From NCBI GenBank assembly GCA_024704765.1, contig JAKMXF010000022.1, forward strand, positions 573,055 through 637,054: a DNA stretch of 64,000 bases. Reading direction: 5' to 3'. The DNA is from Oopsacas minuta (Eukaryota > Animalia > Porifera). Shown in pieces: positions 27,905 through 37,327 of this stretch (within the stretch, counting starts at the first letter, position 1; each line of letters starts with the position of its first letter). Below the pieces are notes generated by a model, which saw only the letters and a program-made list of their open reading frames with translations, made no database searches and was not told the DNA's origin. A program made the translations under genes and the position numbers.

Positions 27905-29915
27905 TATACGAATTTTATTCAACTAGGCATGATATAGTTTCCTATCAAATGAGGGAAATATAAATGTGTCATATTCGTTCGAGTACAATTATAATGAAAC
28001 ATGGGATTGGATCGATAAAATATGAATGTCGGGTTGTAATCCCTAGTCAAAACTCTAGGATAACAATCGAGCAAAAGCTAGTAAAGAAAGCTTTGACAAA
28101 TTACAATTTCAAGAAGCTGATAAACAGCTAAATAACCAGTTTGATAATAATATTAGCAATACGGTAATCTCCTATTACAACGAAGTGATTCTTTACCTCC
28201 GATAACTTGACGATAATTGATTTTACTCCGCTTACGACAAAATATTGCTTATAAAGAAAATGAATCCGAGGTCCCGAGTACTTCTTTATAACCAGAGTTT
28301 ATGTATAACATATACATATTTGATTATTGGCTGTGATACATATGTAGAGAAAATTAAGAGTTAAATTAGACAATCTATAGATGTATACTTCCACAAATAA
28401 TCTGCCGTGATCATGTAGTGCATGCCAACTAGGATGAAGATGTTATCAGTACGGAAACGCGAGTTTTAGTTAGACTCTGCATTTTGCAATTTTGGATGGG
28501 ACATCTCATATGTAAATTAGTCTGGTCAACAAAAACAAGACAAGACAATTCCGAACTTTGCATATTTTGGCGGGACATGAAACTCAATTCCACTCAAAAT
28601 ATATCCAAAAAGGCTATAGAGTTATCATGCCTAGTTGTGGTAATGGGTAATATATATCAAAAAGAAATTCACAATATTGGTTGTAGATAAACAGAAATTC
28701 CATTAAATTTCTCAAATCTAATAAAGGAATAAATAATATATAATTATTGAAAGAGTAATAGGAGTTTGATTCTTTAATCAAATATTGGATAATATAAAAT
28801 ATCCCAAATTATAGCTTTTCCTATCAATTTACATTTGTATTTCCATGGAATTATAAGTAAATTTCTTAAAATTTTATTAAGTGAAAGTTGTATTAGTTTT
28901 AATTCTTTTTTAGTTATAGCGAATATTGAGCCGTAATTACGTTAAAATTATTCATTTTCAGTATTTGTGTAAATTCATACAAACTAGTAAAATTGCTTAT
29001 TCATAACAGAAATATGTAATTACATTGTCGTGCTCATGCTCAGGATGTTTCGCTATAAAGAAAACTTGAGACAAATCCCGCCAAAGAGCTTGCTTAAGAA
29101 TCCAAGTATGCATGATGAACTATTGTATAGATAACATGCAACATTTCCTAACATAGTAAAAAGTATGTTTCATAGTTTCAAAATGCTAATATTTTTAACA
29201 TAAAATATTTTGTGATGAATAAACTGGGAGTGTAGCGGGCAAAACTCGAAAATTACAATTTGTGGAGACTCTTTAATAGAATTAATTAAAGTGGAATGCT
29301 ATTTTGAGGCAGTTTAATCGAAATCAAAGTAATAACACTGATAAACAAAATTGTAAAAGTTTTTGATGATTAAATAAAAATAGTTGAAATTGAACAATTT
29401 GAAGGGAATGTTTATGAATTAGTTAAGTATGTATTCACAACAGGTCTAGAATTTGTAATTTTCTGGTTGGAAGATTGCACCAATATGCGATTAAATATAT
29501 GAAATTAAACATACATTCATGTTTATTACCTACTAAATCATACTAATATTAACTATCACTAGCGCGCTACGCGGATTCTAACACTTCGTGTCCGTACTCA
29601 GCCTTCGACCCTCGCTTTGACTATTAGTTTGTGTGGTTTTCGGTAACAGCGTACCCGATTACACCACAATAACCGTTGAAACCACATTTCTAGGATAATT
29701 TTGAAATTTGTTTACTTTTTGTTTACTTTATATTCATATAAACAACTTAAATTTGTATATGACAAATCCATAAGTGTGATTCGGATTCACATATACGCTA
29801 ACCTTTAGTCAAGTTTTATGAAATTTGTATATTTTCCTGATTAACACCATAGATATAATAGATACAAACATTTTTGCAAATACGAATTCCACATTCCATT
29901 TCAGCTTCCTTAGCA

Positions 29916-30132
29916 ACAGACAAACGGATAGACAGACAGACAGATAGACAGACAGACAGACAGATAGACAGACAGACAGACAGATAGACAGACAGATAGA
30001 CAGATAGACAGACAGATAGACAGATAGACAGACAGATAGACAGATAGACAGATAGATAGACAGACAGACAGATAGACAGATAGACAGACAGATAGACAGA
30101 TAGACAGATAGACAGACAAACAGACAGATAGA
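29916..30132 (+). repeat. Compound (GACA/GATA)n tetranucleotide microsatellite, ~54 units
   Basis: Directly visible GACAGACAGATAGACA... array. Confidence 0.98.
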
Positions 30133-30680
30133 AGACGATTTGGTAAATTGAGATCTCTTATTAGGTCATCAAGATCATCTTGATCAATAAGCTGAGGAGA
30201 ATTATCATCTGGTGGGAGTATGTACTCATCAGAATCTCCACTACTATCATTGTCACTGCTAATGTCCAATATTTCTAATGGAACTGGTACAAGTAGGTCC
30301 TCTGAATGTGGAACTGACCTAATGGCGGACGGTACGTCTGGGTACGCAATACTGGATTTATTCTTTTTTGTGATACCATCAATTTTCGTCATACAGAAAT
30401 AACAATCCGAAAGATGACACATTGGCTCTCTCCATATCATTGGAACCGCAAATGACATTTTCTTTCTCTTCCCAGCATACCACAAGCGTAAGTTCTCAAC
30501 GCATGTCTTACATGCATTGTGTGGAGCCCACGGCTTATCTTAAACCCAAGATGGCATCCAAAATATGCGAAATAACAGCGTTCTATAGCCTTTGTGATAT
30601 TTGTCGTTGGTCAGTTGTAGTATACCTCCCACAAATACGACAAAACTTTTGGGAGAATTTTTATAAACACGAGAAGCCAT
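30133..30680 (-). pseudogene. Frameshifted, 3'-truncated N-terminal part of a Chapaev3-like (CMC superfamily) transposase
   Basis: Across frameshifts reads MASRVYKNSPKSF(C)RICG...YFAYFGCHLG..DKPWAPHNACKTCVENLRLWYAGKRKKMSFAVPMIWREPMCHLSDCYFC...YPDVPSAIRSVPH...DLIRDLNL. The family name comes from my recall of this motif set and needs a Repbase/Dfam check. Confidence 0.7.
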
Positions 30681-35295: not shown

Positions 35296-35643
35296 TCACA
35301 ACACATCCATAGATCCATCTGCAGCTAAATAGAATAGTATCTTTAGCTTGTCAATCTCTTCTATGTATTTCATTTTTTCAGATTTGAGTTTAGATACAGT
35401 TCCTTCAAGTTTTTGAATCTCCTCCTCCAATTTTTCACACTCAAGAACATGCAGCCATTTTTCCCTTCCACGTTTTCTTAACTTATTCAATTGCTCCTTT
35501 TCCTCGGGAGTTAGCGTACACATTAAGCTCTTTTTAAGCTCAGTGCAGGGTAGAAAAATAATATCCTGAATAGTGATATGCTTGTCTTTCAAGAATTGAA
35601 TTTGTGCAAAACTCAAATTACAAGCAAGCCTGTTGTCTGCCAT
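35296..35643 (-). CDS. Small CNC-type bZIP-like protein 1 with degenerate basic region (115 aa; may splice at GTGAGT 35299 to a short extra exon)
   Basis: ITIQDIIFLPCTELKKSL...LTPEEKEQLNKLRKRGREK resembles the CNC extended region; zipper LEGTVSK LKSEKMK YIEEIDK LK. Confidence 0.7.
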   Translation of the reverse strand: MADNRLACNLSFAQIQFLKDKHITIQDIIFLPCTELKKSLMCTLTPEEKEQLNKLRKRGREKWLHVLECEKLEEEIQKLEGTVSKLKSEKMKYIEEIDKLKILFYLAADGSMDVL

Positions 35644-36913
35644 AAAAATATTGTAAATAAAATTCGTGCCAATAAATTAACAATTTAACAAAAGCCTGAA
35701 TTATTTTTGTTAAGTGAAAATGAAAGAAAGTTTATTTATAGTGACCAGAAAATAACTACTCAATACCTTCAATAAACAGGGGAGCTTACCTATTCGTCAT
35801 ACAGAAAATGTTTATGGGCACAAATTTATGCAAATATCAAGCTATCAACCACAAATTAAAAAATTTCCTACTTCGAATCCAGAGATATCTTACAGCGAGA
35901 CAAAACCAAATAGAACTGCCAAATATTTTGAAGTTTCAAATATTTTATGGCCGTAGAAAATGAATCTCAAAATATTCCGATGATCGCTACATTTCGCTGA
36001 TGTGATCTATAACCAGCATGTGCCGACAGTTTAGTATATTTATTAAATTGTGTCAATGGCACAATTAATTGCAGCCACTATGCGTATTGCGGTCAAATTT
36101 AACAATTCATAAATACTACAATTAATATGCAAAATTAAATAAATTCATAATATAATATTCTGTCGCATACTTGCCAACTGTCCTGTTTTTGGCGGGACAT
36201 CACACTTTTTGGACATGTGTTGAGGGTCAATGAGGCAAACGTCCCGCCAAAACTTGTTAAAAACCTAAAGTGTCCCTCTTTTTTGTAGTCCAGGCTAATA
36301 CAAATATGCTACGTCCCGCGATGTCCGCTAAACAGGAATCCAAATACCATGGAAAAATCGAAATTTCTAGTTACGCATATACTCGAAAAGAAAGGATAGA
36401 ATCCCAAACTAATCGAGGAAACAAGAAATTACAGATATGGGCAACCAATTGGTTATTCAATTGCATCAGATAAAATAATGTACACATAAATACATTCAAT
36501 ATAGCTTAATTGTATTTCAATGCTGTTTACTTTAAAACACATAATCACTACGGCAATAATATGGAGGGCTGCCTCTAGGACACAAGTATGCACAAGTTGT
36601 ACTTTGGCAATGAACTTGGTTATTAACCTTGTTGTAAGGATAAAAGTAGAGAGTAGAGCCACAAACAACTAACAAATTATACATATACACATATGACCAA
36701 ACTTTCGATTTTATCATATTTCCAGTGATGAATTTTCAATCAGATTCTATTATGACTGTGATGTGATTGTGAAATAGAAAATTCGTATTTTCAGAATTAA
36801 AGAAAGTTTGTATACCAATTATATTTGTTTTTTCAAACAGGTTTGTGAAGTATAAATAAGTGATTCGAAGATAACAATAACAAAAATAAACAACAAAAAT
36901 AAAATAAATATAA

Positions 36914-37327
36914 ATGTCAAAAGATCGCATTATAGAATACGAATCTGAATTGAGTTCTTCTCAAATTCGATTACTTCAAGGCAAGAATATTTCACTGGAG
37001 AATGTAGTATTTCTATCGTGCACACAACTGAAGAAAAAATTAAAAGACACATATTTCTCTCCAGGAGAAGAAAAACAATTAAAGAAGTTAAGAAAGCGAG
37101 GAAGAGAGAAGTGGCTTCATATAAGAGAATGTCAATATTTACAAGATGACATAATACAACTGGAGGGAACAGCGAAAAATCTGAAAGAAGAAAAACGCAT
37201 ATTGGAAGAAGAAATAGAAAAACTCAAAATAAAATGCTTCCTAGCTGCTCCAGAAAATGCAGTGTATCAGGAAAATAGAATATTGGATGAAATATGCGAG
37301 CAAGACATACTGCAATGTTTCTCTTAA
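36914..37327 (+). CDS. Small CNC-type bZIP-like protein 2 with degenerate basic region (137 aa), paralog of 35296-35643
   Basis: ISLENVVFLSCTQLKKKL...FSPGEEKQLKKLRKRGREKWLH shared with paralog; zipper LEGTAKN LKEEKRI LEEEIEK LK. Confidence 0.72.
   Translation: MSKDRIIEYESELSSSQIRLLQGKNISLENVVFLSCTQLKKKLKDTYFSPGEEKQLKKLRKRGREKWLHIRECQYLQDDIIQLEGTAKNLKEEKRILEEEIEKLKIKCFLAAPENAVYQENRILDEICEQDILQCFS

Follow-up and report, generated by a model that had tools for sequence, protein, structure and literature searches.

A divergent pair of small CNC/Maf-type zipper genes with a rewritten basic region in the glass sponge Oopsacas minuta

A divergent gene pair and its ancestry

The window analysed here, a stretch of 64,000 nucleotides from the genome of Oopsacas minuta, a glass sponge (contig JAKMXF010000022.1, positions 573,055 to 637,054 of the forward strand), contains a head-to-head pair of small genes, here called A and B, which an original prediction had described as CNC-like bZIP proteins with replaced DNA-contact residues and as candidate natural dominant-negative inhibitors. 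Gene A lies at 35296-35643 on the reverse strand and encodes 115 residues; gene B lies at 36914-37327 on the forward strand and encodes 137 residues (coordinates are positions in the window unless a contig or assembly is named). Both open reading frames (ORFs) are intact and intronless, and the surrounding genes in the window are compact and mostly intronless as well, with a prolyl-tRNA-synthetase gene on the side of A and a squalene-epoxidase gene on the side of B. The two genes are divergently oriented, their start codons (35643 and 36914) being 1271 bp apart, exactly as predicted, and an in-frame TAA stands immediately upstream of the B start codon. A and B are paralogs, aligning with 54% identity over 100 residues (BLASTP, E 2e-33), and both contain KLRKRGREKWLH followed by a heptad series of leucines. 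The motif RKRGREK, which had been pointed out as common to the two paralogs, recurs in all orthologs, and its longer form RKRGREKWLH is likewise present in A, B and every one of them.

In B (forward strand throughout), residues 15-48 (36956-37057) form three short helices that correspond to the CNC domain or Maf extended homology region and align with the CNC domain of Nrf2 and Skn-1. Residues 57-66, KKLRKRGREK (37082-37111), are a retained basic stub in which R60, K61, R64 and K66 are invariant across 14 sequences and Glu65 falls on the invariant bZIP Asn position; the stub resembles a nuclear localisation signal and probably serves as one. It runs into the former DNA-reading part of the basic region, residues 65-79 (EKWLHIRECQYLQDD; 37106-37150), with a net charge of -2 and hydrophobic residues at heptad positions a0 (C73) and d0 (L76). 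The leucine zipper (residues 76-111; 37139-37246) has L76, L83, L90, L97, L104 and A111 at its d positions and an invariant Lys94 at an a position, and it is continuous with the basic helix, since the long helix of B spans residues 50-111 and thus includes Leu 76, 83, 90, 97 and 104. A conserved cap follows the zipper (residues 105-114, KIKCFLAAPE; 37226-37255; K105, I106, L110 and A111 invariant), and the protein ends in a C-terminal motif (residues 127-137, EQDILQCFS; 37292-37324) with a helix predicted at low confidence for residues 129-136. This motif (consensus (E/D)QD(I/V)(L/M)QCF in B and its orthologs) is shared by the B-side copy at six of the seven other loci, by L042 and by the L087 copy on the prolyl-tRNA-synthetase side; A of the window lacks it. 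Given this C-terminal motif, which B and its orthologs keep, the prediction that the pair lacks an activation domain is uncertain. In A (reverse strand), residues 54-75 (KLRKRGREKWLHVLECEKLEEE; 35419-35484) comprise the basic stub and then the acidified former basic region, with a net charge of -4 over the segment from the Asn equivalent to +14, and the zipper was placed at residues 72-107 (35323-35430) from the alignment with B and the heptads.

We found that several methods connect these proteins to the CNC/Maf branch of the bZIP family. A 12-sequence family profile searched against the PDB (177,635 sequences) ranked Nrf2 (E 0.002) and Skn-1 (E 0.0066) highest, followed by MafB, MafG and BACH1. 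A hidden Markov model (HMM) built from 29 sponge bZIP_Maf proteins, from which the focal ones were excluded, recognised B (E 8e-9), A (E 4.5e-5) and a third paralog located elsewhere in the genome (G000:C321:231375-231719; E 1.3e-10), and hhalign comparison of the focal alignment with ten canonical sponge CNC/Maf proteins returned 97.2% probability (E 4.6e-11). A profile search of 1.84 billion representative proteins gave 29 matches at E <= 0.001, among which the clear relatives are small proteins with an RKRER-type stub, and two are canonical proteins (one canonical CNC protein at E 4.6e-4).

The predicted fold points in the same direction. The AF2 model of B (predicted local distance difference test, pLDDT, 84.6) contains helices at 15-23, 28-33 and 36-42, that is, the CNC domain helices N-terminal to the basic region, and the long helix at 50-111. 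Aligned with VIA-align 2, it matched Nrf2 with Z 7.7 (104-105 residues, root-mean-square deviation about 6), Skn-1 with 6.4 and Mafs with 5.1-5.7, Z values below 8 being common for helical models; the top nine rows were all CNC or Maf proteins. Foldseek alone gave no match at E <= 0.001, its best rows being Nrf2 (probability 1.00, E 0.012) and Skn-1. Since the profile comparison, the profile search reaching a canonical CNC protein and the predicted fold agree, descent of A and B from CNC/Maf bZIP transcription factors is supported by these sequence-based and modelling approaches.

In an 82-sequence tree, A, B and the third paralog group with four other genes carrying an RKRE(R/K) stub (support 94/97), and we refer to these seven genes as the focal clade. 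The clade falls in the half of the tree without canonical CNC-like genes, with support of only 22/78 at the deep nodes, so placement as CNC-like or Maf-like is weakly resolved. Of the predicted CNC-like bZIP identity, then, the bZIP/CNC-Maf homology stood on profile methods; the choice of CNC over Maf was left undecided by the tree, and the Pfam cut-off was missed (scores are given below).

The former DNA-reading stretch

The bZIP basic signature N-x2-AA-x2-(C/S)-R is absent from A and B: Glu occupies the Asn position in both alignments that we considered, and there is no Ala-Ala. The two alignments differ in the remainder of the stretch. In the HMMER alignment, which is nearly ungapped, L83 is the first zipper Leu and the five contact positions, compared with Nrf2, read E, L, H, E and C. 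In the hhalign alignment, gaps of 2 and 5 residues make L76 the first zipper Leu and put R71 on the invariant Arg; this alignment also pairs the C-terminal FLAAPE with GILPPE of a canonical 97-residue sponge CNC-like protein. The ESMFold2 complex described below uses the slid register, with L76 of B opposite the first zipper position of the partner, and a seven-residue slide of the zipper raises the agreement of the focal proteins with canonical zippers by 0.38-0.82 per column. The same slide is favoured in only 1 of 29 canonical proteins but in 43 of 56 other non-canonical paralogs, and because these behave alike the register test does not prove a seven-residue deletion. Robust to the choice of alignment, on the sequence comparison, are the change of Asn to Glu, the loss of Ala-Ala and of the C-terminal basic cluster, and a coiled-coil pattern that starts at least one heptad nearer the stub. 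By contrast, the predicted change of Arg to Cys, on which the idea of redox sensitivity had been built, is not robust, as it occurs in only one of the two alignments; replacement of the contact residues was thus borne out for E, L, H, E and C in the ungapped Nrf2 alignment, and for Asn to Glu in both.

A and B are not a stand-alone invention. Six-frame translation of the assembly (61.5 Mb, 365 contigs) gave 92 matches to bZIP_Maf, about 80 of them above the cut-off, and at least 86 ORFs with a complete basic region were recovered, most of them encoding 100-170 residues and mostly intronless. The residues at the Asn and Arg positions of these 86 ORFs were the canonical Asn...Arg in 29, Met...Arg in 20, Ser...Arg in 9 and other combinations in 28. 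Identical inverted pairs occur among them (e.g. on contigs C345, at 67097- / 70310+, C321, at 250484- / 251549+, and C55), and the head-to-head layout of A and B is a recurrent feature of the expansion. The pair belongs to the extreme clade of an expansion, spread over the genome, of mini-bZIPs whose basic regions have been rewritten.

What sets this clade apart is charge. Over the 15 residues from the Asn equivalent onward (Asn to Asn+14), the net charge is -4 in A, -2 in B and -4 in the third paralog, and these are the sole negative values among the 86 proteins of the genome (median +4, maximum +7). The orthologs range from -2 to -4, with the exception of a divergent relative, P0010 (+2). 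Hydrophobic residues at both a0 (Asn+8) and d0 (Asn+11) were found, among the 86, only in five of the seven genes of the focal clade. The other mini-bZIP clusters of the genome belong to the same lineage-specific expansion and, like the pair, consist of tiny genes of CNC/Maf type that lack introns and have a rewritten or shortened basic region; in most of their members this region is still strongly basic (+4 to +7 for the same residues), and the focal clade alone is net acidic. Judged from its sequence, the former DNA-reading stretch is a conserved, net-acidic and amphipathic segment, EKWLHxRECxxLxxE, that continues the zipper heptads N-terminally. We hold it very probable that A and B are conserved CNC/Maf-derived genes without a canonical DNA-reading surface, and we consider it likely, with somewhat less assurance, that no sequence-specific DNA reading takes place through the helix.

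The rewritten stretch is strongly maintained. A word-indexed protein search detected orthologs at 45-76% identity (66-76% for B), all in large sponge-derived assemblies, and the gene order prolyl-tRNA synthetase (mitochondrial-type), A, B, squalene epoxidase is kept in seven further glass-sponge assemblies (L001, L083-L087 and L088), with open frames intact in eight genomes. The ratio of non-synonymous to synonymous divergence (dN/dS; Nei-Gojobori estimates) was 0.10-0.25, not near 1, in every pair without synonymous saturation, e.g. 0.148 for L001_B and L084_B (synonymous divergence, dS, 0.31), 0.148 for L083_B and L085_B (dS 0.55), 0.128 for B of the window and L001_B (dS 1.2) and 0.237 for L001_A and L084_A (dS 0.89); for B against its orthologs it was 0.12-0.15. 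The remaining pairs are mostly saturated at synonymous sites while their proteins can still be aligned. Within B, the most constrained segment is the former basic core, residues 58-72, with a mean pairwise identity of 88% and a ratio of non-synonymous to synonymous differences per site (pN/pS) of 0.08. The cap (105-114, KIKCFLAAPE) follows with 76% and 0.11, then the accessory helices (15-48) with 49% and 0.27 and the zipper (77-104) with 54% and 0.35. The original prediction had read the shared REKWLH as a mark of selection and not of decay, and these values agree with it. Constraint as strong as this points to a specific function of the rewritten stretch, beyond the mere loss of DNA contact.

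The same data bear on the possibility that A and B are decaying, functionless duplicates, drifting since a bZIP gene lost its basic region. The missed Pfam thresholds, the fast evolution of A and a scrambled stretch in the A-side copy of L085 might be taken to speak for it; we nonetheless find it hardly credible, given a dN/dS of 0.10-0.25 despite synonymous saturation between most species, intact frames in eight genomes and the fact that the supposedly decayed stretch is the best-conserved part of the protein. A pseudogene reading was rejected on dN/dS, and neutral decay is excluded for B.

The two copies have had somewhat different histories. A is the longer branch in every genome (0.95 vs 0.19 for B in the window), B being the slower-evolving copy, and the C-terminal tail has been lost from A in several species. 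A division of A and B into separate orthologous groups was rejected, as in three species the tree makes A and B each other's closest relatives. The head-to-head copies are nearly identical in L083 (3126-5429), L085 (1990-5435) and L086 (3278-5402), and because dS within these species (0.10-0.25) lies far below that between species (0.55-0.9), the sequences suggest that gene conversion between inverted copies best accounts for these pairs. The A-side ortholog of L085 (1990-2409, reverse strand) carries a scrambled 24-residue stretch, RAAVESSLTSHVRECSVSNVHSAQ, where accessory helices are expected, which could be either a compensating frameshift pair in a decaying copy or an assembly error.

Possible pairing with other bZIP_Maf proteins and rival readings

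Two g-e' pairs, D79-E84' and E93-E98', are repulsive when B pairs with itself; the invariant K94 occupies an a position, and the net g-e' score of the homodimer is -2. The genome also holds four tandem large-Maf genes (G000:C88:838941-846343; L012-L015), which encode 256-320 residues with Pro/Ser-rich N-termini and canonical NxxYAxxCR basic regions and are the only long Maf-type members seen. Paired with B, these large Mafs score +4 to +5, their a-position lysines being staggered relative to K94.

One alternative, which takes the Cys idea of the original prediction further, would allow self-pairing through a redox switch: Cys73 and Cys108, at a positions near the two zipper ends, would form inter-chain disulfides, and a homodimer would assemble only under oxidising conditions. 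Most A and B orthologs keep these cysteines, which fall within the interface modelled below. At position 73, however, the third paralog clade carries L, V, E or N, A of the window has Phe in place of C108, and the homodimer electrostatics are net repulsive, which makes such a switch very unlikely in our judgement.

The original prediction had proposed modelling with small Maf, CNC or Jun partners; here a large Maf was taken. The ESMFold2 complex of B (residues 24-116) with a large Maf (residues 208-320) scored 0.63, as against 0.01 for the best of three controls; the runs agreed in at least 98% of contacts, and the pLDDT of the partner was 81. Of 78 solved complexes, 51 reach the mark used to judge such models, as do 2 of 108 mismatched pairs; among eukaryotes it is reached by 39 of 65 solved pairs that have no similar complex in older structures, and by 2 of 126 unrelated pairs. 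In the model, the interface is a parallel coiled coil running from H69 to A112 and including residues 69, 72-73 and 76-77; where the partner's basic region ends, its R270 and K271 lie opposite E72 and C73 of B. The model supports, but does not show, a pairing of B with a large Maf through the zipper.

Taken together, we propose that A and B may be small nuclear-type proteins that keep the three accessory helices, the RKRGR stub and a zipper of five to six heptads. With two g-e' pairs that repel and a Lys kept invariant at an a position, the zipper would disfavour self-pairing, and each protein would instead form a heterodimer with a DNA-binding member of the expanded sponge bZIP_Maf family, e.g. 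one of the large Mafs. The acidic extension would then rest on the end of the partner's basic region, and the resulting dimer, with one DNA-reading arm or none, would have its binding to targets blocked or altered. We give about an even chance to this explanation as a whole, that is, to CNC/Maf-derived zipper proteins that block or alter the target binding of a partner, and the narrower statement that they are zipper-mediated modulators of other bZIP_Maf proteins is in our view similarly balanced; that they act as outright inhibitors is more doubtful, and we put it somewhat short of even. The identity of the dimer partner, the nuclear location and the inhibitory outcome are what we infer.

Several points weigh against this proposal. 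The g-e'/a-a' electrostatic score is crude and served only to choose one pair for modelling, and the complex model does not pick out a partner within the family and may in part reflect remembered bZIP dimers among solved structures. In the Pfam search, A scored 15.5 bits and the third paralog 20.3 bits against the bZIP_Maf cut-off of 22, and B gave no bZIP match. In the divergent intergenic region (35644-36913; 1270 bp between the start codons, presumed to hold both promoters), no antioxidant response element (ARE), Maf recognition element (MARE), TPA response element (TRE) or cAMP response element (CRE) that would connect the pair with the CNC/Maf circuit is conserved across the 8 orthologous loci. 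The public runs in which the locus occurs are four, all of a single sample. Coverage by their contigs is even across genes and intergenic DNA, and the contigs carry Nextera adapters at their ends, from which we conclude that the runs are DNA and not RNA. The rewritten stretch is also more constrained than a passive blocker would need and, carrying an invariant Trp67, might provide a new surface that binds something else. Finally, the basic stub and the accessory helices might still touch the DNA backbone, by analogy with Skn-1.

The last two points each lead to an alternative. If the conserved surface is a binding site in its own right, A and B could be repurposed coiled-coil adaptors whose REKWLHxRE block and KCFLAAP cap attach to a target that is not a bZIP protein, outside the dimer networks of transcription factors. 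The distribution of constraint would fit, pN/pS being far lower in the rewritten block (0.08) and in the cap (0.11) than in the zipper (0.35), which is the most variable part, and B having a conserved C-terminal motif of its own. Yet the whole CNC/Maf architecture is retained and confidently modelled, about 85 potential zipper partners are present in the genome, and the modelled Maf pairing passes its controls; we regard an adaptor of this kind as rather improbable.

If, on the other hand, the stub retains some contact with DNA, the proteins could change the specificity of a partner instead of blocking it: the heterodimer would bind DNA through the partner's arm, while the helices and RKRGR stub of the mini protein grip the backbone and retarget the partner to half sites or composite sites. 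Skn-1, one of the top structural matches, binds DNA with its CNC domain plus basic helix, without a zipper, and the basic stub and accessory helices of the pair are strictly conserved. In addition, the basic regions of two thirds of the 86 paralogs are rewritten yet remain basic, a pattern suggesting that new DNA specificities are being explored within the family. At the place where the helix would insert into the major groove, however, only the focal clade is net acidic, and in the better-scoring register the stub of the focal proteins sits one heptad nearer the zipper than in canonical bZIPs. We therefore consider a specificity-changing partner unlikely, if worth bearing in mind, and return to the proposal that A and B block or alter the target binding of a bZIP_Maf partner.

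For this proposal, known systems offer partial parallels. CNC proteins (Nrf2/NFE2L2, NF-E2 p45 and Skn-1) and Mafs share with A and B the three accessory helices followed by a long helix, the RxRG(K/R) stub and a heterodimer-preferring zipper; unlike them, the focal proteins have neither the Asn...Arg signature nor Ala-Ala nor Neh-type regulatory domains, their reading stretch is acidic, and they are only 115-137 residues long. Natural bZIP proteins with a defective basic region include CREBZF (also Zhangfei or SMILE) and CHOP/DDIT3. CHOP dimerises, is not known to bind DNA alone and represses. SMILE is likewise reported to dimerise, not to bind DNA alone and to act as a repressor (PMC9917820). 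CREBZF and CHOP differ from A and B in being larger, in belonging to the CREB/ATF and C/EBP branches and in having few disabling substitutions, whereas the focal proteins have had the whole reading stretch rewritten on a CNC/Maf-type scaffold.

The A-ZIP dominant negatives of the Vinson laboratory reportedly carry an acidic amphipathic extension in place of the basic region, so that the coiled coil is continued onto the partner's basic region. The A-ZIP-like character ascribed to the pair by the original prediction held in part. A net charge of -2 to -4 unique among the 86 proteins, hydrophobic a0 and d0 positions and a modelled interface reaching up to H69 all resemble such a design, but the focal extension is shorter than designed ones (about 1.5 heptads), keeps Arg71 and the RKRGR stub, and is far less acidic. 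The small dominant-negative Nrf1 gamma/delta isoforms (PMC4188613), the Id/Emc helix-loop-helix proteins and the plant microProteins (LITTLE ZIPPER) are likewise small derivatives of a transcription-factor family that retain the dimerisation module and titrate the full-length members of that family. These have other folds, or are isoforms of one gene with the basic region kept, whereas A and B are separate, long-kept genes in which the replaced segment is itself highly conserved. By analogy, we would place A and B with CHOP, CREBZF and A-ZIP-like proteins as a variant of this known kind.

Genome-wide setting and flanking sequence

In the survey of Jindrich and Degnan, which sampled no glass sponge, animal bZIP repertoires are portrayed as stable, and the basic-region Asn and Arg as nearly invariant across eukaryotes (PMC4736632). 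The O. minuta genome breaks both rules: its 61 Mb contain at least 86 mini genes of CNC/Maf type, two thirds of which have a rewritten basic region, and in the focal clade the DNA-reading helix has been turned into a conserved acidic zipper extension. The published Oopsacas and Aphrocallistes genome papers do not describe a mini bZIP_Maf expansion: the former never mentions bZIP or Maf, and the latter mentions one bZIP of unknown function. Should A and B indeed titrate or retarget their partners, they would represent a natural equivalent, of CNC/Maf type, to the engineered A-ZIP inhibitors, and no such natural equivalent was found described in the literature searched; they would also provide a handle on regulation in a genome that has lost many classical transcription factors. 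Many classical developmental transcription factors have been lost in glass sponges, and a bolder version, in which about 86 mini CNC/Maf zipper proteins form a combinatorial regulatory network with the focal clade as its dedicated natural A-ZIP, REKWLHxRE clamping the basic regions of partners and the Cys residues at both zipper ends acting as a redox switch, strikes us as a long shot.

Other members of the expansion show features of their own. The third paralog (231375-231719) lies near two inverted pairs of genes with an RKRE(R/K) stub, in a second cluster of the focal clade (G000:C321:229878-252875); the members of one pair (238491/241124) are alike in score, and those of the other (250484/251549) are identical. 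One clade of Met...Arg mini-bZIPs (C55:198717-201981, C353:123808-124137, C332:1354491-1354835, C44:832386-832730, C354:575831-576175 and others) shares an acidic C-terminal motif, SSDEDDEYGEFV(I/V)VD, an ending that by sequence resembles an acidic activation motif or a docking motif of the LC3-interacting region (LIR) type.

Evidence of transcription within the focal clade comes from a relative only, as one gene of the seven-member RKRER-stub clade is present as a Vazella pourtalesii TRINITY transcript. For A and B themselves, purifying selection lends indirect support to their being expressed protein-coding genes. The ortholog contigs in Logan and the European Nucleotide Archive (ENA) come from metagenomes or from data of unspecified type. 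No words of 10 or more bases are shared by the divergent intergenic regions of the 8 orthologous loci, and Rfam gave no match at the locus. The intergenic region of the window also contains an interspersed repeat of about 168 bp (36166-36332) with short terminal inverted repeats (TTTTGGCGGGAC / GTCCCGCCAAAA), where read depth reaches up to 100 times that of the flanks. At least 155 candidate copies are present genome-wide at 78-90% identity, and from its sequence the element looks like a miniature inverted-repeat transposable element (MITE). Elsewhere in the window, an ORF at 29910-30485 on the reverse strand encodes 191 residues, with a Cys-rich N-terminal piece and a C-terminal half made of an (LSVCLSVY)n-like repeat, which on its composition is probably translated satellite or low-complexity DNA.

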